Below are positions 957 to 42,990 of a stretch of 50,392 nt of DNA, piece after piece (the stretch's first letter is position 1; each line of letters starts with the position of its first letter). The stretch is from positions 1 to 50,392 of the forward strand of contig NW_021834848.1 in assembly GCF_006345805.1 (NCBI RefSeq). The letters run 5' to 3'. The notes beneath the pieces are model-generated. The model saw only the letters and a program-made list of their open reading frames with translations, made no database searches and was not told the origin of the DNA. Position numbers and translations under genes: made by a program. This DNA is from Octopus sinensis. Its lineage: Eukaryota.

Positions 957-1290
957 GTAAGGGTAAAGACCCCCTTCGATCATGAATGACCATGGGATTG
1001 CACCTAGAAAGTTACCCTCCTAGACACAAGTCCGGGCAAGGTTGTTTATGGAAGACCAGCAGTCGCCCATGCATACCAGCCTCCCCTCTCCACGCCACCA
1101 GTGTTATCCAAGGGAAAGACAAAGGCCGATACAGCTTGGCACCTGTGACGTCGCAACTCATTTCTACAGTTGAGTGAACTGGAGCAACGTGAAATAAAGT
1201 GCCTTGCTCAAGAACACAACACGCAGCCCGGTCCGGGATTCAAGCTCACAACCTCACGATCGTAAGCTCGACGCTCTAACCACTGAGCCA
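957..1290 (-). mobile_element. tRNA-derived SINE
   Basis: Head ggctcagtggttagagcg...ttgaatcccgg (A/B boxes), central ttgtgttcttgagcaaggcactttatttcacgttgctccag, flanked by TA/TG microsatellite. Confidence 0.8.
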
Positions 1291-1575
1291 GTGTGTATAT
1301 ATGTATAGTGTGTATATATGTATAGTGTATATATATACATGTATATATATATGTATATATATATATATATGTGTATATATGTATATATATATGTATATAT
1401 ATGTATATATATATGTTTATATGTATATATATATATGTATATATATATGTATATATGTATATATGTATATATATATGTATATATGTATATATATATATAT
1501 GTGTATATATATATGTATATATATGTATATATATATGTATAGATATATATATATATGTATATATATCTATATATG

Positions 1576-1606
<31 letters not shown>

Positions 1607-1822
1607 GTATATATATATATATTTGTATATATATATATGTTATATATATGTATATATATGTATATATATATATATATATGCATATATATATATACAACAA
1701 AATATTAAGGAATGACCCTGAGAAGGTCGTTCGACTCACTTGAAAAGAGCAGCTGAAACTCAAAACCGCAAAAAATAGTAATTCTGAAACTAGAGGAAAA
1801 TAAAAAACATTTATCCCCTTCA

Positions 1823-1920
1823 AACTTTGTACCCTGCAAGGTTTCAACATCTTTACGCAATCAAATTTAATTAAATTAAAGTAAATCCATTTACGCTTGG
1901 CTTGTCTCGTCAGCAAAGTC
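1823..1920 (-). ncRNA. Type I hammerhead ribozyme with intact core
   Basis: GACUUUG-CUGACGA-GACA[53 nt]UGUU-GAAA-CCUUGCAGGGU-A-CAAAGUU. Stem I 7 bp, stem II 4 bp, near-palindromic stem III, GUA cleavage triplet (cut after 1830). Confidence 0.8.
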
Positions 1921-2113
1921 ACCAAAATAGGAGGCAGATATATATACACGAGGCTACACCATCTAAGCCTCGGGTCTATATATCGTAAATTTTCGAATTC
2001 ACCGTAATCGCGCCATCTACTCCGCAGCAAATATAAGCTGCTGATACAAATTTCAGAATTAGTCAAAAATTCATTAATCAATCAATATAAGGGTAACAAA
2101 AAATTCAAGAAAA

Positions 2114-2720
2114 ATGTTCTGCCACCAGCGGTCAAGTGAGAAAATTGTACATATTAGGCAACTTGATGTAGTTGTGTGTGCTACATATCGCCCTCCAGAT
2201 GCCCCAAGCCATGTGGGCAAGTTTGAAGACTGCCTTATAAAAATAGAAGAAGTTCTAACCACATTAGAACAACACATAAGTGTACTTCTTATGGGAGACT
2301 TCAATCTGCCCAAGACTTTAATGCTTCTGTGAAAGGGAAATGCAGATATCAGGGTCTTTCATAGCTTTCTCTTGTGTTTTTCTGATATATTTTGCTTCTC
2401 CTTCACTGGAACTTGAAAATTTCATCGTTCATCTACTGAGGTATGTTCTAATTCAGCCAGCATTTGTCTCTTATGATTTGTGGAACTGTTTCAGAATTAG
2501 TGCTTAGCTAATTATTCCAGGCTGGAAGTGGATGATAGAAAAATATATTCCAATTATAGAAACGGAAGTCAACCTATCCTAGGTAACATCCTCAAACTGA
2601 TTTAGTATCAATTCCCAACAGCTTGGTGAATTGCTGAGGTCATGAAGAACTAAATTTGCTTCCTACAGAAGCACAATGACTTGGTTGCAGTGGATTCCAC
2701 TCCCTCATCAACTCAACTTT
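2114..2720 (+). mobile_element. CR1/L2-like LINE apurinic endonuclease fragment
   Basis: VVCATYRPPD...VLLMGDFNLP, and later QPILGNILKLI resembling the PT..NILDL motif. Confidence 0.75.
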
Positions 2721-21298: not shown

Positions 21299-21329
<31 letters not shown>

Positions 21330-21331
21330 GT

Positions 21332-21653
21332 GAGGGCGCGTGGCTTAGTGGTTAGGGCATTCGGCTCATGATCGTAAGGTTGTGAGTTTGATTCCCGGCG
21401 ACGCGTTGTGTCCTTGAGCAAGACACTTTATTTCACGTTGCTCCAGTCCACTCAGCTGGCAAAAATGAGTTGTACTTGTATTTCAAAGGGTCAGCCTTGT
21501 CACTCTCTGTGTCACGCTGATTATCCCCGAGAACTACGTTAAGGGTACACGTGTCTGTGGAATGCTCAGCCATTTGCACGTTAATTTCACGAGCAAGCTG
21601 TTCCGTTGATCGTATCAGCTGGGACCCTCGTCGCCGTAACCGGCGGAGTCTTT

Positions 21654-21658
<5 letters not shown>
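21332..21658 (+). mobile_element. tRNA-derived SINE sharing head and core with 957-1290 but with a different tail
   Basis: ggcttagtggttagggc...ttgattcccgg...tgtgtccttgagcaagacactttatttcacgttgctccag; ends in a T-run. Confidence 0.8.
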
Positions 21659-21726
<68 letters not shown>

Positions 21727-21826
21727 CATATACATACGATATATATATATGTTTGTATATATATACATACAGATATATAAATATATACATAAGATATATG
21801 TATATTAATATATATATATTTTTTTC

Positions 21827-23139
21827 GTTTAACGTCCGCTTTCCATGCTAACATGGGTTGGACGATTTTGACTGAGGGCTGGCGAACCAGATGGCTGCAC
21901 CAGGCGCCAATCTTGATCTGGCAGAGTTTCCACAGCTTGATGCCCTTCCTAACGCCAACCACTCCGCGAGTGTAGTGGATGCTGGCAATGACCTAGCTCG
22001 AATCTTTTTACACATGCCACCGGCACAGGTGCCAGTGAAGCGACGTTGGTAACGAGCATAGTTGGATGGTACTCTTGGCACCCTACTAGCACAGGCATAA
22101 GTACCAGTAATGCGACACTGGTAACGATCATACTCGAATAGCTGCTCTGTTAACGATCACACTCGTATGGTGCTCTTTGCACCCCACTAGCACGGATGCC
22201 AGTCATCAAATTGATTTTGATTTCCCTTGCCTCAACTGGTCTTTGAAAGCAGAGTTTAGTGATCAAAGAAGGGAAAGGTATGCATAAGCAGGCTGGTTAT
22301 GCTCCTAGCATAGGCCACAAGCTATGGTCAAATTTGGCTTGCCGGGTCTTCTCAAGCACAGCATACTTCCAAAAGTCTCAGTCGCTAGTCATTTCGTTGG
22401 TAAGGTCTAATGTTCGAAGCTCGTGCTTCACCACTTCATCCCAGGTTTTCCTGGGTCTACTTCTTCCTCAGGTTCCCTCAACCACTAGGGTGTGGCACTT
22501 TTTCATGCAGCTATCCTCATCCATTCTTGCCACATGACCATACCAGTGCAGTCGTCTCTCTTGCTCACCACATCTGATGCTTCTTCGGTCCAACATTTCT
22601 CTCAAGGTACCTACACTCTGTCGAGTATGAACACTGACATTACACATCCATTGGATCATACGGGCTTCATTCCTTGTGAGCTTACGCATGTCCTCAGCAG
22701 TCACAGCCCATGTTTCACTGCCGTGTAGCATGGCTGTTCATACACATGCATCATACAGTGTACCTTTTACTCTGAGTGAGAGGCCCTTTGTCACCAGCAG
22801 TGGTAATAGCTCTCTGAACTTTGCCCAAGCTATTCTTATTCTAGCAGCTACACTTTCAGTGCACCCTCCTCAGTTACTGACTTGGTCACCTAGATAACAG
22901 AAGCTATCAACTACTTCTAGTTTTTCTCCCTGGAATGTGGCAGAAGTTGGTCTCTGCGCATTTTCAGTGTTTATCACCCCCGAGCATCTGCCACATACAA
23001 AAACTATCTTCCCAGTTAGCCTTCCTTTGATATTACTGCACCTCTTATGTGTCCATAGCTTACACTGGGTACATCTTATAGAGTTTCTACCTATGCCTCT
23101 ACTACAGATCGAGTAGGGCCATCTACCTGAAGGGATTTG
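21827..23139 (-). mobile_element. 5'-truncated RTE-clade LINE with 3' UTR and tail
   Basis: Peptide MLHGSETWAVTAEDMRKL...WYGHVARMDEDSC; tail motif ccatgytagcatggaaagcggacgttaaa. Confidence 0.9.
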
Positions 23140-24670
23140 TGGAATTCAAGACAGGATGCCCCTGGGAGCTCCTCTATGCTGATGACCTTGCCCTAATTGC
23201 TGAGTCACTATCAGAACTGGAGGAGAGGTTTCAGGTGTGGAAGCAAGGATTAGAATCGAAGGGCCTTAGAGTCAACCTAGCTAAAACCAAAGTTCTAATA
23301 AGTAGGAAGGTAGACAAATCACAAACACCTTCAGGTAGATGGCCCTGCTCGATCTGTAGAAAAGGCATAGGTAGAAACTCTATAAGATGCACCAAGTGTA
23401 AGCTATGGACACATAAGAGGTACAGCAATGTCAAAGGAAGGCTAACTAGGAAGATAGTTTTTGTATGTGGCAGATGCTCAGGAGCAATAAACACTGAAAA
23501 TACGCAGAGACCATCTTCCGCCACATTCCAGGGAGAAAAACTAGAAATAGTTGATAGCTTCCGTTACCTAGGTGACCAAGTCAGTAGTGGGGCTGGGGGT
23601 GCTGAAAGTGTAACTGCTAGAGTAAGAATAGCCCGGGCAAAGTTCAGAGAGCTCTTACGTCTGCTGGTGACAAAGGGCCTCTTGCTCAGAGTAAAAGGCA
23701 GATTGTATGACGCATGTGTATGAACAGCTATGCTACATGGCAGTGAAACATGGGCCGTGACTGCTGAGGATATGCGAAAGCTCGCAAGAAATGAAGCCAG
23801 TATGCTCCGATGGATGTGTAATGTCAGTGTTCATACTCGACAGAGTGTAAGTACTTTGACAGAAAAGTTGGACCTAAGAAGCATCAGTTGTGGTGTGCAA
23901 GAGAGACATTTGCGCTGGTAGGGTCATGTGGCGAGAATGGATGAAGATAGTTGTGTGAAAAAGCGGCACACCCTAGTGGTTGAGGGAACCTGAGAAAGAG
24001 GTAGACCCAGGAAAACCTGGGACAAGGTGGTGAAGCACGACCTTCGAACTTTAGGTCTCACCGAGGAAATGACTAGAGACCGAGACCTTTGGAAGTATGC
24101 TGTGCATGAAAAGACCTGGCAGGACAAGTGAGGCCATAATCCCGTGGCCTCTACCTGGGATGTAGCCAGGCCACTTATGCATTCCTTTCCTTCTTGGGAC
24201 ACAAAGCTCCACTTGTGAAGACCTGTTGAGGCAAGTGAAAATCAAAATCAAAATCGTATTCGATCAACATCAATGGAATTTGTAGCTGTGATACCAGTGC
24301 CGGTGGCACGTAAGAAGCACCATCCGAACGTGGCTGTAGCCAGCGCCGCCCTGACTAGCCTCCGTGCCGGTGGCATGTAAAATGCACCATCCGATTCGTG
24401 GCCGTTGCCAGCTTCATCTGGTCTCCATGCCGGTGGTACGTAAAATGTACCATCCGATTGTGGCCGTTTGCCAGCCTCGTCTGGCATGTAAAAAGCACCC
24501 ACTACACTCACGGAGTGGTTGGCATTACGAAGGGCATCCAGCTGTAGAAACACTGCCAGATCAGACTGGGCCTGGTGCAGCCTTCTGGCTTCCCAGACCC
24601 CAGTTGAACCGTCCAACCCATGCTAGCATGGAAAGCGGACGTTAAACGATGATGATGATGATGATGATGA
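23140..24670 (+). mobile_element. 5'-truncated RTE-clade LINE (RT C-terminal half, tandem-repeat 3' UTR, (GAT)n tail)
   Basis: PWELLYADDLALIAES...KTK...FRYLGDQ...HGSETW...GHVARM...RGRPRKTW with in-frame stops. Cys-rich insert CSICRKGIGRNSIRCTKCKLWTHKR...CGRC. Confidence 0.92.
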
Positions 24671-25820: not shown

Positions 25821-25931
25821 CACTTCTCCCATCTTGTTTTTGGCATATTCGATCCGTATTCCTCCCCTATCTGATGACAATAGTACAAAACCATGTAGCC
25901 TGTTCATGGCTTCAGTTGCTTGTCTCACATC
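25821..25931 (-). CDS. cpo: Couch potato/MEC-8-family exon encoding the end of RRM2 (phase 0/0)
   Basis: Acceptor tttttctAG, donor GTaagac. 111 nt = DVRQATEAMNRLHGFVLLSSDRGGIRIEYAKNKMGEV, the RRM2 end typical of two-RRM cpo/MEC-8 proteins. Confidence 0.92.
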
Positions 25932-27505: not shown

Positions 27506-27919
27506 GATATATATATATATATATATAGTTGTAAGTACATACATGTATGTACATACACACACACACGCACACAACCGTCACTAGATTTGTATTTCTTGAG
27601 ATAACATATGGGACAACCAATCAATCTAAGTACTTGAATAGACTGAAAAAGAAAGTGATTTAATATCTACCTGTTTACTTGTTTAATCAATAAATGGTCT
27701 TGCACAAATATTGACAAAAATACATTCGCAAATATTAATCTATGGCTTAGGAAAACTGGGAAAGTTAAACAGAATTGTATGTCTACTACGACTTGCCTAG
27801 TGTTTATTTTTCGAAAGATTGAACTCTACCTGGCGGTATTTGAAAGGAAGACACAAAGAAAGGTATAGAAATCCAAAATGCAAATCTTAATCGTTAGCTA
27901 ATTAAAGGGAAATAACTCT

Positions 27920-28195
27920 AAAATCAATTGCAGCGTGGAAGGTGTTTATAATCCATTTAAAAATACAAAAACCGTTAGATTCATTTCAATATTTAAATTC
28001 AATTTGCCAAAATATTTTCGTCGCTTTGAAACTGCGACCAGTTCACTGACAAAATTCTGCGCGGCATCACCGAATTTTGTTAGTGAAGAGGTCGCGGTCT
28101 CAAAGCGACGAAAATATTTAAATGTTGAAATTAATTTAACGGTTTTTGTGTGTTTTTAAATCGCTTATTAACACCTTCCACGCTGCAATTGTTTT
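27920..28195. repeat. Fold-back element with about 130 bp arms
   Basis: caattgcagcgtggaaggtgtt...aacaccttccacgctgcaattg with a loop of about 15 nt. Confidence 0.85.
28003..28056 (-). ncRNA. Hammerhead-like scaffold with non-canonical core (GUGAACU)
   Basis: UUUGUCA-GUGAACU-G-GUCGC(aguuucaaa)GCGAC-GAA-AAUAUU-U-UGGCAAA. Stem I 7 bp, stem II 5 bp, palindromic stem III. The other arm of the element reads GUGAAGA. Confidence 0.35.
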
Positions 28196-28633
28196 TGTTT
28201 TAGCACACAATCTCAGATCAGGTTACTTGCTATGCAAGTACAACTCCGTAACTATAAAATCGTTTAAGGGAAATAATTGATCAGACTTGAAGTAGCTATA
28301 ATTAAAACTGTACGCAATTTATGAGCATTCAGTTCTTAAGCATCATGTGGATCAAGGTGGTCCCATTAGATACAGTAGCAAACTCTTAATATCTTTCCAG
28401 GAGGTACTGTAGACTAGAATTGTCTTCTCACGTTTTCCTTCTTGATCGTTTTCATAATGATGCTCGCACGGGTCGCAGACGTTGCAAAGGAACTCCGTCT
28501 CTACTTCCAATTCCCCACTGACAGCAGCTTGTTTAACAGTTTTATATTAGGACACTGGAAGACCTCATCTGCGAACAAGTCTATGTTGTCGGTGATGCGT
28601 TCTTCTGTGTGTGTGTGTATGAGAGAGAGATAG

Positions 28634-28797
<164 letters not shown>

Positions 28798-29126
28798 ATT
28801 TGTGCGACATGGTTGCAGGTGTGGCTGCGAGGTAAGAAGTTTCTTTACAAAGTTCAGCTCTGCTCAGTGGCTCTTTGGATAAGTGTCTTCTACTATGGCA
28901 CCTGGTCGCTAAAGCTTTGTGATTAGATTTGGCAGATGAAACCCGACGAAAAAGAAAAAAAAAAGGAAAGGGCTCGTCGTGTGTGTTCGCACACAGACAC
29001 ATTTGGCAAGAGAACTTCTTACAAAACCGTTACGCCTGCAATCATTCTACATACACACATGTATGTATGTATGTATGTATGTATGTATGTATGTATGTAT
29101 GTATGTATGCATGCATGCATGCATGC

Positions 29127-29154
<28 letters not shown>

Positions 29155-29157
<3 letters not shown>

Positions 29158-29500
29158 GCTGGACTCATGAGTCATCTTCGTAGTCATAAAACGAGACAGA
29201 TGAGTGACAACCTGGTCACTGGTGGTGGTGTAACACACCATACTAATCATATCTGTCGGGCATGTGGAAGAGAGTGTAATTCGGCAGGAGGACTTAAACG
29301 ACATGCAAAGGTACATGAAGCCCAGTTAAAACTACAGCCGGCTATTACCAGTAAAGGTTTTAGCTGCCAATTTTGTACAAGACATTGTAGATCTTTAGCT
29401 GGGCTAAAAAGTCACATTCGATCACAGCACCAGTAACAGTTAAGCTTCGTGCAATGGCCATACTCGATAACGAGGGGGCAGCCATAATAATAATAATTAT
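29155..29500 (+). mobile_element. 3' end of a LINE-like element encoding C2H2 zinc fingers
   Basis: KAGLMSHLRSH...CRACGRECNSAGGLKRHAKVH...CQFCTRHCRSLAGLKSHIRSQH*, then a short UTR and (TAA)n tail. The 5' end abuts an (ATGT)n microsatellite. Confidence 0.6.
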
Positions 29501-31846: not shown

Positions 31847-32451
31847 AATACTATATATATACATATATATTTATTTATTATATATTATATATACAAAACG
31901 CACGCATCCCTTTTTAAGTAAGATTGTTCTTTATATCAAGTTTTGTTCTTGATATTAACTTTGATGCGCACTCTTAACTTTCTGTCCCATCCCTTTCTCA
32001 GCCTTCATTCCTTGATTCCTTTTCCTCTACTTAACTTGTCTCTTCCTCTCTCTCATTCTTCACTCTCTCTCTCCCCCTCTCCATTCTCATGGTTTTCCTC
32101 GCAGCCATTCCCCTTCTTCTCTCCCTTTCTCTTGCTCTCTCCCCCTCCCGTCGTTGACCCGCGATGAGACTTCCGCTGCTGCTTTTCTGGCCTGGCCCTC
32201 TCAAGGTATGGACGACAATTCTTTTTGCTCCGCTCGTCGTTCATAAAAAAAAATTCACGTTCGCTATACTTTTTTTCGTTCGGCGTTAACAGCCCATCTT
32301 ATCTTGTTTTTCCTTGTCCTGTCTTCTACTGTTTACAATTTGTACTGTCGTTACTGTCCTGTTTTTATTACCATTTTTTACCCCTCTGCGGAAAGATCTC
32401 AGAATTTTAATTGATTTGCTTTTCGCAGGAAGGAAAGTTTCTTGTCGAAGA

Positions 32452-32513
32452 TACGTCTCGCTTTTATCCTTCGAAACGTAGAGTAGATGAAACCATAGCG
32501 ACTGAAGAAGGGG
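32452..32513 (+). ncRNA. Non-circularly permuted (pseudoknotted) hammerhead candidate, copy 1
   Basis: UACGU-C-UCGCU-uuuauCCUUC-GAA-ACGUA-[16 nt]-AGCGA-CUGAAGA-A-GGGG. Stem III 5 bp, stem I 5 bp, stem II about 4 bp with G-U pairs, GUC triplet at 32455-32457. Confidence 0.65.
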
Positions 32514-32902
32514 TTTTTTCTTTGTGTTAATTGTCCTGTACTCTTTTTTTTTGCTGTTTTTAAATATATGTCCAGTTCTTTTGGTTTGTGTCTATATTTT
32601 CGTTTCTCATTGTGTTCGACGTCCTTTTGGTGTCCTGTACTCATATATGCGTGTATATGTACATGTAGAGGTAGGTACGTACATATATGTTTATATATAT
32701 GCATATGTTCTATTTTATTATTTATTTAATATTATATTATATATATGTATATATATATATGTATATATACATTATATACATATATATATATACATATATA
32801 TATATATACATATATATATACATATATATATACATATATATATATACATATATATTATATACATATATATATATACATATATATATATACATATATATAT
32901 AT

Positions 32903-32933
<31 letters not shown>

Positions 32934-33151
32934 AATATATATTAATAAATAAAATAGAACATATGCATATATATAAACATTATGTACGTACCTACCTCTA
33001 CATGTACATATACACGCATATATGAGTACAGACACCAAAGGGACGTCGAACACCATGAGAAACGAAAACATAGACACAAACAAAAGAACTGGACATATAT
33101 TAAAAACAGCAAAAAAAATAGAATACAGGACCAATTAACACAAAGAAAAAA

Positions 33152-33214
33152 CCCCTTCTTCAGTCGCTAAAGCTTTTATCTACTCTACGTTTCAAAGGAT
33201 AAAAGCGAGACGTA
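33152..33214 (-). ncRNA. Non-circularly permuted hammerhead candidate, copy 2 (inverted partner, sense to cpo pre-mRNA)
   Basis: UACGU-C-UCGCU-uuuauCCUUU-GAA-ACGUA-[17 nt]-AGCGA-CUGAAGA-AGGGG. Predicted cut after 33209. Confidence 0.65.
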
Positions 33215-33979
33215 TCTTCGACAAGAAACTTTCCTTCCTGCGAAAAGCAAATCAATTAAAATTCTGAGATCTTTTCGCAGAGGGGTAAAAAATGGTAACA
33301 ACAGGACAGTAACGACAGTACAAATTGTAAACAGTAGAAGACAGGACAAGGAAAAAGAAGATAAGAAGGGCTGTTGACGCTGAACGAAAAAAAGTATTAC
33401 AAATGCAGAATTTTTTATGGACGACGAGTGGAGGAAAAAGAGTGACGTCCATTACTTTGAAAGAGCCAGTGCTCCATGTCTGGTCATGGTGAAATATTGC
33501 CTTTCTCGGAAACAAGTGAGATTTAGGCACTGGAAGCTTAGCCTGCTGTAGAAAATTTACCTCCATGAAACTCCATTTGGCCCATGTGAGCATGGAAAGG
33601 GGAACATTAACATGCATAAAAACAATGATCACACACACACGTGCGTGCACACATGCAATATATAAAAGGATTCATTTAAATAACTATTGCACATGTGGCT
33701 CCATAACCGACCTGTTATACTTTATATAATAAATATCCATCACTTCATTGGCAAATGAAATCTTAAATAAATGTTCTAAAGGAAGAAAACTATAGCGTTT
33801 GTTATCATAGGCTGACACACGCAAAAAAAAAAGAAAAAACTCCAAAATGAACAAAACTTATTCAATGAAAAAGTAGAATAAAAAAATAGAGCCCATGATA
33901 AACATGGACAATGATTATAATGTCAAGAAAAAAAAGGAAAGAGATATGAAGAATGTATAATATATTAATACACACACAC

Positions 33980-34519: not shown

Positions 34520-34589
34520 CTGGAATTCAACAAAAGCTACAGGAGAACCTCCTTTGTTATGCATCCGTAATCGACAGAACCCAGGGAAG
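34520..34589 (-). CDS. cpo: Couch potato/MEC-8/RBPMS-family RNA-binding protein, internal exon encoding the middle of RRM2 (phase 2 in, phase 0 out)
   Basis: Acceptor atcaatttcAG at 34591-34590 and donor GTaggaatt at 34519-34518. 70 nt = 1 nt + FPGFCRLRMHNKGGSPVAFVEFQ, which includes the RNP1-like VAFVEF. Joins in frame to the next exon. Confidence 0.9.
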
Positions 34590-41229: not shown

Positions 41230-42990
41230 TGTTCCAGAACTTATCTCTTCTGGTTCAATTCTTCACACTATTATATCCAATGTAACCACACTCCAAATCT
41301 CCACCATCTGCTTCACAAACCAGACAATCTAGTCTTATTGTCTCTGTAACTGTCTCATGGAATTTATGCCATCATACTATGACAGACTATTATTAACTCT
41401 TGTTGCTGCCTTACCCTCACACCTTAAATACACCAACCATGTCCTAGATTTCATTAACCTGTTCTCTCTTTTTTTTGTGGAGAGTCTAAACTTCTTTTCA
41501 CTATAGACTCAAATCCCTGTACACCACTATCATATCTGATAACGATGGCCTACTAGCCCTTAAACACTACTACATGCCTTCACCTGGCTGAGATCATCCT
41601 AATCCTTAACTGCTTATCCTTTTCTTGAGAATTTTAACAAGAAGTCAGTAATGTCACAATAGGAACTAAGATAAGACCCAATTATGTGAACTTCTTTGAA
41701 GGCCATACTAAAGAGAAAATCTTTGCTTGGTTCCTCAGACCCAACTAAGATCTGTATGGTCACTATGAGGACAACAGACAATAGCAAAACAACATTTTTG
41801 TTAATGCCCTTCACCATGCCTGGGAATTTACTTCCGTTGTATTTGACGCTTTTGTTAGTTTTCTCCATCACCATAAACGATATTCACCTCTCCACCTCTG
41901 TCCACTACAAACCTCCTGACTCTCATTTTTATCTCCACTACTCTCCTTCAAGTCCCAAACATTTTAAATTTGTCTTTCTCTCAATCACCTCTCCATTACC
42001 ACCTCTGCAACACTGATTAGATTTCAAATCCCAATGCCAAAGAAAGCAAGAATTTTCACTGAACCAAGGGTACCCTTGATCAGTTGTGGACCCTGCACTC
42101 TACCAGACTCAGGCCATCAACTGCACAACCACTCTCCTACCATCTTTATGCATCTCTACAGACTCGGTTCCACTTGTCTCTCCCCTCATTGAAGAATAAA
42201 TTCATCCACAGCTTCTCTATTCTGTTTTCTAGCCTCACAACCATTCCAGTCTTTCTCTGCACCACCTCTCCTCAACTTTAAACATGATAAGCCCCATAGC
42301 ACCTGGCTCCACACAACCAGGCAGTTTTAAATGCACTTTCTGATGATGCAACACCTGCCCCTAACTTCACCATACTACTACCATCACTGGACCTAAGGCA
42401 CAATGTCATGTTACACAGAACTTCTGCTACACATCGTTTAATCTGATAGATTTCCTTTCATGCAAACTTTGCTGCATCCTTTACGTAGGGGAAACAAACT
42501 GGCACCTTGCTGATTGCTTTTAGGCGCATATTTGAAGCATACTACTAGGTAAGCCAGGCCAACCTGTTACTGACCACCACTACAGGTCATTCTGTCGCTC
42601 ACTTATCAGTGTGTGGCACCACCACATTCAATGGATCCACAGTATCAAGGAAACGGAAATAACAATGTTTCATATTTGAACTTGGTACCAAATCACAGAC
42701 AGGTTTAAATGAACGTTTTGCCTTCTATTCTTGCACAGGGTCTTAGTTCATTAAACCCTTTCTTATCTTTCCCCTTCAACTCACTCTCAACTTCTCATCC
42801 CTCTTCCTTCTCACACTGTTTATCCTGTCTCATCTTCACTTCTGAAGCTCATGCAATCCTGCATTCCTTATCAGTTGCAGACACTTTTTAAAAAATCTTA
42901 TCTCCCATTAATTTTTCTACCTTCAACTGTTCCCTGAAGAAGGCTCTCTATGCAAGATGTGGAATTTCCAACTCTTCAGGGCAGGTTCAC
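41230..42990 (+). mobile_element. Decayed Penelope-like retroelement (RT + GIY-YIG endonuclease)
   Basis: Frameshifted peptides SNVTIGTKIRPNYVNFFEGH, LYGHYED (YIDD-like), LSTSVHYKPPDSHFYLHYS, SCKLCCILYVGET (about 42460-42495) and FIFELGT...GLNERFAF. A decayed CTGAAGAAGGC hammerhead core lies at 42934 just after the ORF. Confidence 0.85.

Follow-up and report, generated by a model that had tools for sequence, protein, structure and literature searches.

Results

A cpo-like gene and a hammerhead motif lie on the same strand

The window, i.e., the whole 50,392-nt stretch of Octopus sinensis DNA analyzed here, carries on its minus strand two exons of an RRM gene and, downstream of them, a hammerhead ribozyme motif inside a small CpG-rich block. 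The two exons (34520–34579 and 25821–25931) have canonical AG/GT borders. MEC-8, RBPMS, and couch potato (cpo) belong to one family. Joined, the exons specify an RRM over its C-terminal two-thirds, with a match to the RRM of C. elegans MEC-8 (PDB 6dg0) at E = 2e-19; the cpo/RBPMS/MEC-8-like gene is real. Since exon 25821–25931 closes with a GT donor, the gene goes on downstream, toward the hammerhead, on the same strand. The exon for RNP2 is absent from the window, and C-terminal exons past 25821 were not recognizable. The original prediction placed the hammerhead downstream of, and co-directional with, a cpo-like gene, which the RRM exons bear out; its stop codon near 8.1 kb, claimed to be ~6.2 kb from the hammerhead, was however sought in the window and not found. 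The last verified cpo-like exon ends 23.9 kb from the hammerhead.

The hammerhead itself was identified by a descriptor scan of both strands and a constrained fold. It is a complete type I motif on the minus strand, running from 1920 to 1823, and it is the sole good type I candidate that the scan returned from the window. Coordinates of its parts, of the block that hosts it, and of the neighboring features are collected in Table 1.

Table 1. Positions of the hammerhead parts, the host block, and its flanks, in window numbering
Feature	Coordinates	Strand	Remarks
Helix I, 5' strand (GACUUUG)	1914–1920	-	Pairs with 1829–1823; 7 bp including one G.U
Core box 1 (CUGACGA; C3 U4 G5 A6 C7 G8 A9)	1907–1913	-	Sequence reading
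Helix II	1846–1906	-	4-bp base, GACA (1906–1903)/UGUU (1849–1846), around a 53-nt insert
Core box 2 (G12 A13 A14)	1843–1845	-	Sequence reading
Helix III (ACCUUGCAGGGU; A15.1...U16.1)	1831–1842	-	Self-complementary 12-mer
Predicted cleavage site, between A17 (1830) and C1.1 (1829)	1829–1830	-	From motif position
Helix I, 3' strand (CAAAGUU)	1823–1829	-	Descriptor scan and constrained fold
Host element	1697–2110	-	~370–410 bp, 35% GC; 5' limit somewhere within 2030–2110
Hairpin 17 nt 5' of the hammerhead	1937–1984	-	Arms 1937–1955 and 1966–1984, 19 nt, 89% complementary
(TA)n microsatellite, (TA)199	1296–1694	.	TRF; abuts the minus-strand 3' end of the element
Old CpG-poor LINE endonuclease fragment, on the other flank	2171–2317	+	Pfam Exo_endo_phos_2, E = 4e-4, under the curated cut-off

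Architecture of the hammerhead motif

Read 5' to 3', the motif is GACUUUG / CUGACGA / GACA-(53 nt)-UGUU / GAA / ACCUUGCAGGGU / A / CAAAGUU. Every invariant position of the hammerhead core is kept, i.e., CUGACGA, GAA, the A15.1–U16.1 pair, and A17 (H17 = A), and the parts follow one another in the type I manner (helix I 5' strand, box 1, helix II, box 2, helix III, H, helix I 3' strand) with helices of 7, 4, and 4 bp. Helix III has two options: it may form 4 bp (A-U, C-G, C-G, U.G) closed by a UGCA loop, or it may pair as a 12-nt self-complementary duplex. All structural elements that had been listed for a complete type I hammerhead, including the near-palindromic 12-nt stem III and the hairpin upstream of the motif, were found again on the minus strand, and the proposed cut after 1830 agrees with our predicted position in that A17 is window base 1830.

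The 53 nt within helix II had been described as a large loop with internal structure. In our fold, residues 1902–1850 form an imperfect extended hairpin rather than an open loop: a 6 × 5-nt internal loop is followed by helices of ~6, 8, and 2 bp, and the insert by itself folds at -8.1 kcal/mol. As read from this single sequence, helix II runs on beyond the internal loop; a distal closure of helix I is not evident. Two further observations concern the insert. A direct repeat, GCGUAAA ... GCGUAAA (1864–1900, minus strand), flanks 31 nt of it, which would be compatible with a lengthening of helix II by a small duplication or insertion. The insert also begins with GUAAAU and closes with AAAG; at 44 nt this is below the usual intron size.

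The motif had also been called intact. This holds for the core and the three helices, but two departures from the canonical type qualify the term. The base pair of helix II is a G10.1.U11.1 wobble instead of the conserved G10.1–C11.1, with G10.1 retained; a G-C pair at 10.1–11.1 is given as a hallmark of hammerheads (PMC4209133), and the axolotl HHR_Amex2 has a U.U mismatch at the base of helix II and keeps its cleavage (PMC7229834). Second, no hammerhead model of Rfam 15 matched, neither in the whole window at gathering score nor in slices of 901 nt and 126 nt at E ≤ 10; the Rfam matches that we did obtain were TA-repeat "miRNA" artefacts. The miss is likely caused by the 53-nt helix II insert, which is atypical for hammerheads. 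Here, then, is a hammerhead that is complete in structure, carries a large insert in helix II, and escapes all Rfam models; counts in cephalopod genomes that rely on such models may therefore be too low for variants with a long helix II insertion.

The motif is rarely met by chance

Two descriptors were used for the estimate of chance occurrence, a loose one (helices of at least 4/3/2 bp) and a strict one (at least 6/4/3 bp). Over 300 dinucleotide-preserving shuffles of the window, loose matches numbered 0.02 per shuffled window and strict matches 0. Markov-1 sequence with the same composition as the window, 65 Mb in all, yielded 17 loose matches, corresponding to ~520 per Gb of double-stranded genome, and again 0 strict ones. 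Extrapolating from the loose rate, we estimate that a motif this good turns up about once per Gb, i.e., ~1e-4 or less per window. Chance is a poor explanation for the motif in this window because of that expectation. Extrapolated to a whole genome of several Gb, the rate would nevertheless predict a handful of such accidents at the observed stringency.

A motif that arose by accident in AT-rich intergenic DNA, with no ribozyme history behind it, would also fit the missing Rfam match, the lack of relatives described below, and the stability of the motif region, which does not exceed that of its shuffles (z = 0.18). What such an accident would not require is the particular geometry of the helices (6–7/4 bp) and a self-complementary helix III for which the predicted dimer of minimum energy is a double hammerhead, as set out in the next section. 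Nor would it need to fall inside a discrete, CpG-rich block of the size of a transposable element, in a lineage, the cephalopods, whose genomes are known to carry type I hammerheads (PMC6962438). Weighing these points together, we regard an accidental origin as rather improbable.

The predicted fold favors a dimer

The 98-nt motif on its own is not predicted to spend much time in the hammerhead shape. Its monomer MFE is -16.9 kcal/mol versus -14.8 kcal/mol for the hammerhead fold, which makes up ~0.5% of the monomer ensemble. For two copies the prediction is different: without constraints, the RNAcofold homodimer MFE comes out precisely as a double hammerhead. In it, helix III pairs between the two molecules over 12 bp, each helix I forms in trans, the two helices II are present, and the cores stay unpaired. 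The homodimer reaches -45.1 kcal/mol versus 2 × -16.9 kcal/mol for two monomers, and the self-duplex of helix III (ACCUUGCAGGGU), which the dimer MFE uses between the molecules, is computed at -18.9 kcal/mol. These models, i.e., the double-hammerhead homodimer MFE and the ~0.5% share of the monomer ensemble, back the dimer dependence that had been anticipated for this motif. Such behavior has precedent among metazoan type I hammerheads whose palindromic helix III is weak (PMC4209133, PMC7229834, PMC7761336).

The hammerhead sits in a discrete, CpG-rich block

The block around the hammerhead stands out by its CpG content. Its CpG o/e is 1.13 versus 0.43 for the whole window and 0.30 for the median tile, and all of its 14 CpGs fall within 1728–2023. 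Because CpG is not depleted there, we read the host block as a discrete, fairly young insertion. As a whole, the block also folds somewhat more stably than its shuffles (z = -2.3). Retrozyme units are ~170–400 bp long, low in GC, and have no LTR, PBS, or PPT, and the block conforms to this in size and base composition (Table 1). The predicted cut site and the element end next to the (TA)n array are ~130 nt apart; please note that this adjacency is weak evidence, because (TA)n arrays are ubiquitous in the window.

Elsewhere in the window, CpG o/e exceeds 1.2 in blocks at ~957–1295, 21320–21950, 27740–28360, and 32090–33300, and the high-CpG blocks of the window are probably young repeats.

The element had been given short inverted ends. 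A perfect 11-nt inverted repeat is indeed present (1779–1789 and 2051–2061), but it does not qualify as the element's termini: the CpG-rich block is not bounded by the arms and passes the left one to 1728, no target-site duplication was found beside the arms, and such repeats are common in this DNA. Inverted repeats of at least 11 nt occur in 41 of the 106 real 474-nt tiles of the window (39%) versus 2.5% of Markov resamples, so that the repeat is not distinctive here and we rejected it as marking the element ends.

The same repeat bears on the question of whether the hammerhead could travel in some other small non-autonomous carrier, either a MITE bounded by the 11-bp inverted repeat or a LINE-mobilized SINE resembling Schistosoma Sm-alpha. 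The repeat does flank both the hammerhead and its upstream hairpin, and by the Markov resamples it would be a rarity; octopus genomes are moreover rich in SINEs, and a SINE-like block sits in the very same (TA)n array at ~957–1295. The tile frequency, the absence of a duplication at the arms, and the CpG-rich sequence beyond the left arm speak against a MITE, and ARAGORN found no tRNA-like head in the element. A carrier of either sort is, in our opinion, unlikely. As for the SINE-like block itself, it is CpG-rich over ~977–1272 and splits the (TA)n array, and a further copy lies near 21369–21540.

The minus frame across the host block is stop-free for 128 codons, a length reached in 0.2% of Markov resamples and in 5% of real tiles. 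An AUG lies at 1850–1848, in the 3' strand of helix II and 21 nt ahead of the cut, and the frame is open for 153 nt from there to the element end. A 275-aa ORF (1254–2090, minus strand) is stop-free through the entire element and extends into the (TA)n array; it is without protein homologues.

Searches for further copies

No second copy of the element or of the hammerhead was found in the 50-kb window by self-BLAST, by searches with each half allowing three mismatches, or by type III and min-hammerhead scans. Tandem arrangement, by which retrozymes are defined, was likewise absent from the window (self-BLAST, TRF, and motif scans), and no RT or GIY-YIG coding sequence of the kind that would associate the element with Penelope-like elements (PLEs) adjoins it. 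One stretch, 41700–42720 on the plus strand, frameshifted, looked by eye like a PLE thumb plus a GIY-YIG end (...FLSCKLCCILYVGET...); it gave no Pfam match and no homologue and was set aside.

Outside the window, a 21-kb O. vulgaris locus contained no related sequence. The translated minus frame found no relatives among 5.8 billion proteins, nor did a full HMMER search against 1.84 billion representatives; there was one marginal match, with 27% identity and E = 3e-4. A pattern scan of IMG/VR gave 0 matches. A single GTDB pattern match lies within bacterial coding sequence and is put down to chance. The three pattern matches in JGI metagenomes (L001–L003) are also attributed to chance: all belong to one conserved element, which is not a hammerhead because it is without helix I and without an Rfam match. 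That shared element (L001 4316–4387, L002 94–165, and L003 4281–4352) is GC-rich and structured-looking, and contains CTGACGAG and GAAACCTTGCAGGGTA.

Since no second copy was found in these searches, there is also no family alignment, covariation, or consensus, and the assignment of the element to a family proceeds by analogy. If a family exists, its consensus would tell whether the G.U pair at 10.1–11.1 and the long helix II are tolerated or reflect decay in this copy.

Discussion

Comparison with hammerhead-bearing elements of animals

Recent work treats non-LTR retrozymes and Penelope-like elements as one lineage, and both are among the known systems closest to the octopus element. In canonical metazoan type I hammerheads helix I is 6–7 bp, helix II is 4 bp, and helix III is short and palindromic (PMC4209133, PMC7229834). 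The retrozymes of Mytilus galloprovincialis occur as units of 350–390 bp with low GC in ~5000 copies (PMC7229834). The octopus element agrees with these metazoan non-LTR retrozymes in the type I arrangement, in helix I (~6 bp) and helix II (4 bp), in a short helix III with a palindromic tetraloop cap, in unit size, low GC, and mollusc host; as in the mussel hammerhead, the archetypal nucleotides of loops 1 and 2 could not be made out. Unlike the Mytilus retrozymes, the octopus copy is single, not tandem, carries the 53-nt helix II extension, and has G.U at 10.1–11.1.

Hammerheads in the pLTRs of PLEs are mostly single motifs, which has been attributed to truncated copies (PMC4209133), and hammerheads that occur dispersed and singly are common, as are monomers of retrozymes (PMC4209133; bioRxiv 10.64898/2026.07.22.740005). 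PLE insertions are biased toward microsatellites, and the hammerheads of PLEs are located close to the 3' end (PMC8557442). In Anolis, the ORF of the Poseidon PLE begins inside the hammerhead, 26 bp ahead of the cut, and insertions stop 111–118 bp into the ORF and are followed by a tail of 30–40 bp (PMC11167929). The octopus motif is like PLE pLTR hammerheads (PMC4209133, PMC8557442, PMC11167929) in being a dispersed single motif with a palindromic helix III that implies dimers, and in lying near the 3' end of the element beside a microsatellite target, the last of these being a weak likeness given the ubiquity of (TA)n in the window. Its AUG and open frame overlap the hammerhead as they do in Anolis Poseidon, a parallel that is suggestive but weak. 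It differs from PLE hammerheads in that no RT or GIY-YIG ORF stands beside it, and from PLE min-hammerheads in having neither the bulged nucleotide between A9 and 10.1 nor an uninterrupted helix II of 6–8 bp, and in having a real 4-bp helix III. Min-hammerheads are further marked by a palindrome at 15.2–16.2 and loop 3, and helix III of the octopus motif is palindromic.

The hammerheads of amphibian satellite 2 and of axolotl retrozymes provide a further comparison, since they self-cleave in a dimer-dependent manner through helix III, the kind of dimer that our fold predicts here, and since the base of helix II is weakened in the octopus motif as it also is in HHR_Amex2, which cleaves. Theirs are huge tandem arrays with conserved loop-loop contacts, whereas the octopus copy is a lone one. 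With the discontinuous CLEC2 hammerheads in rodent 3' UTRs and with HH9/HH10 in amniote introns it shares a large insertion in one helix and a location in or near a host gene transcript; those hammerheads, however, are conserved across species and match Rfam, and the octopus element looks like a young insertion. Among cephalopods, 235 Rfam hammerhead_1 loci are on record for the giant squid, and Penelope elements are present in cephalopod genomes (PMC6962438).

Because architecture, size, base composition, host phylum, and the single dispersed occurrence all fit the hammerhead retroelements of animals, we consider the element to be probably a solitary copy of such a retroelement, i.e., either a single unit of a non-LTR retrozyme or a 5'-truncated PLE represented by its 3' end (pLTR). 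We infer that the copy inserted fairly recently at the edge of the (TA)n microsatellite, downstream of the cpo/RBPMS-like gene. Thousands of copies of retrozyme and PLE hammerheads have already been described in invertebrates, so one extra copy changes little.

Would the hammerhead cleave at this locus?

Retrozymes appear to be promoterless and to depend on read-through transcription (PMC7761336), and the octopus element probably has no promoter of its own and would be transcribed by read-through only. If it is transcribed, the RNA would be cut after A17 (1830), leaving a 2',3'-cyclic phosphate and a 5'-OH. Given the poor folding of one copy into the active shape, cutting would be efficient only if two copies paired via the self-complementary helix III, or with the help of factors or tertiary contacts. 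The monomer fold being disfavored and no partner copy lying within 50 kb, cleavage would probably be inefficient here, and from the folding models we expect it to be weak or absent in a one-copy locus.

The position of the motif invites the thought that the host has recruited it, on the model of CLEC2, to trim or destabilize cpo/RBPMS-like transcripts, either in a long 3' UTR or in read-through RNA. The hammerhead does lie downstream of the RRM exons on their strand, retrozymes appear to depend on read-through (PMC7761336), and in Xenopus the retrozyme copies that overlap exons tend toward 3' UTRs (bioRxiv 10.64898/2026.07.22.740005). The evidence from the locus points the other way: the stop codon and 3' end of the cpo-like gene were not located, the last verified exon is far off, the CpG-rich state suggests a recent insertion and not a conserved regulatory part, the monomer fold is disfavored, and a partner for the dimer was not found in 50 kb. 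We saw no sign that the hammerhead regulates the cpo-like gene, and hold recruitment by the host to be very unlikely. With a solitary retroelement copy, which we favor, the relation would be reversed: as retrozymes appear to rely on read-through, transcription of the cpo-like gene would serve the element rather than the gene.

A bolder combination is also conceivable, in which the motif represents a distinct octopus lineage of type I hammerheads with a helix II of ~60 nt that current models miss, and in which this copy is cleaved in vivo after read-through from the neuronally important cpo/RBPMS-like gene, giving rise to an alternative 3' end of its transcript. We would call this combination a long shot.

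Other features of the window

Two observations remain on the rest of the window. The same LINE RT/PHD-finger region occurs twice, head-to-head and inverted, at 22471–23145 (minus strand) and 23082–23918 (plus strand); its ORF at 23082–23720 (plus strand) has 78–87% identity to proteins of Octopus vulgaris and O. bimaculoides, which marks the window as octopus DNA. The ORF at 28927–29433 (plus strand) follows a microsatellite-derived stretch and contains C2H2 zinc-finger motifs (weak Pfam matches, below cut-offs); it may be a fragment of a gene or an exon derived from a TE.
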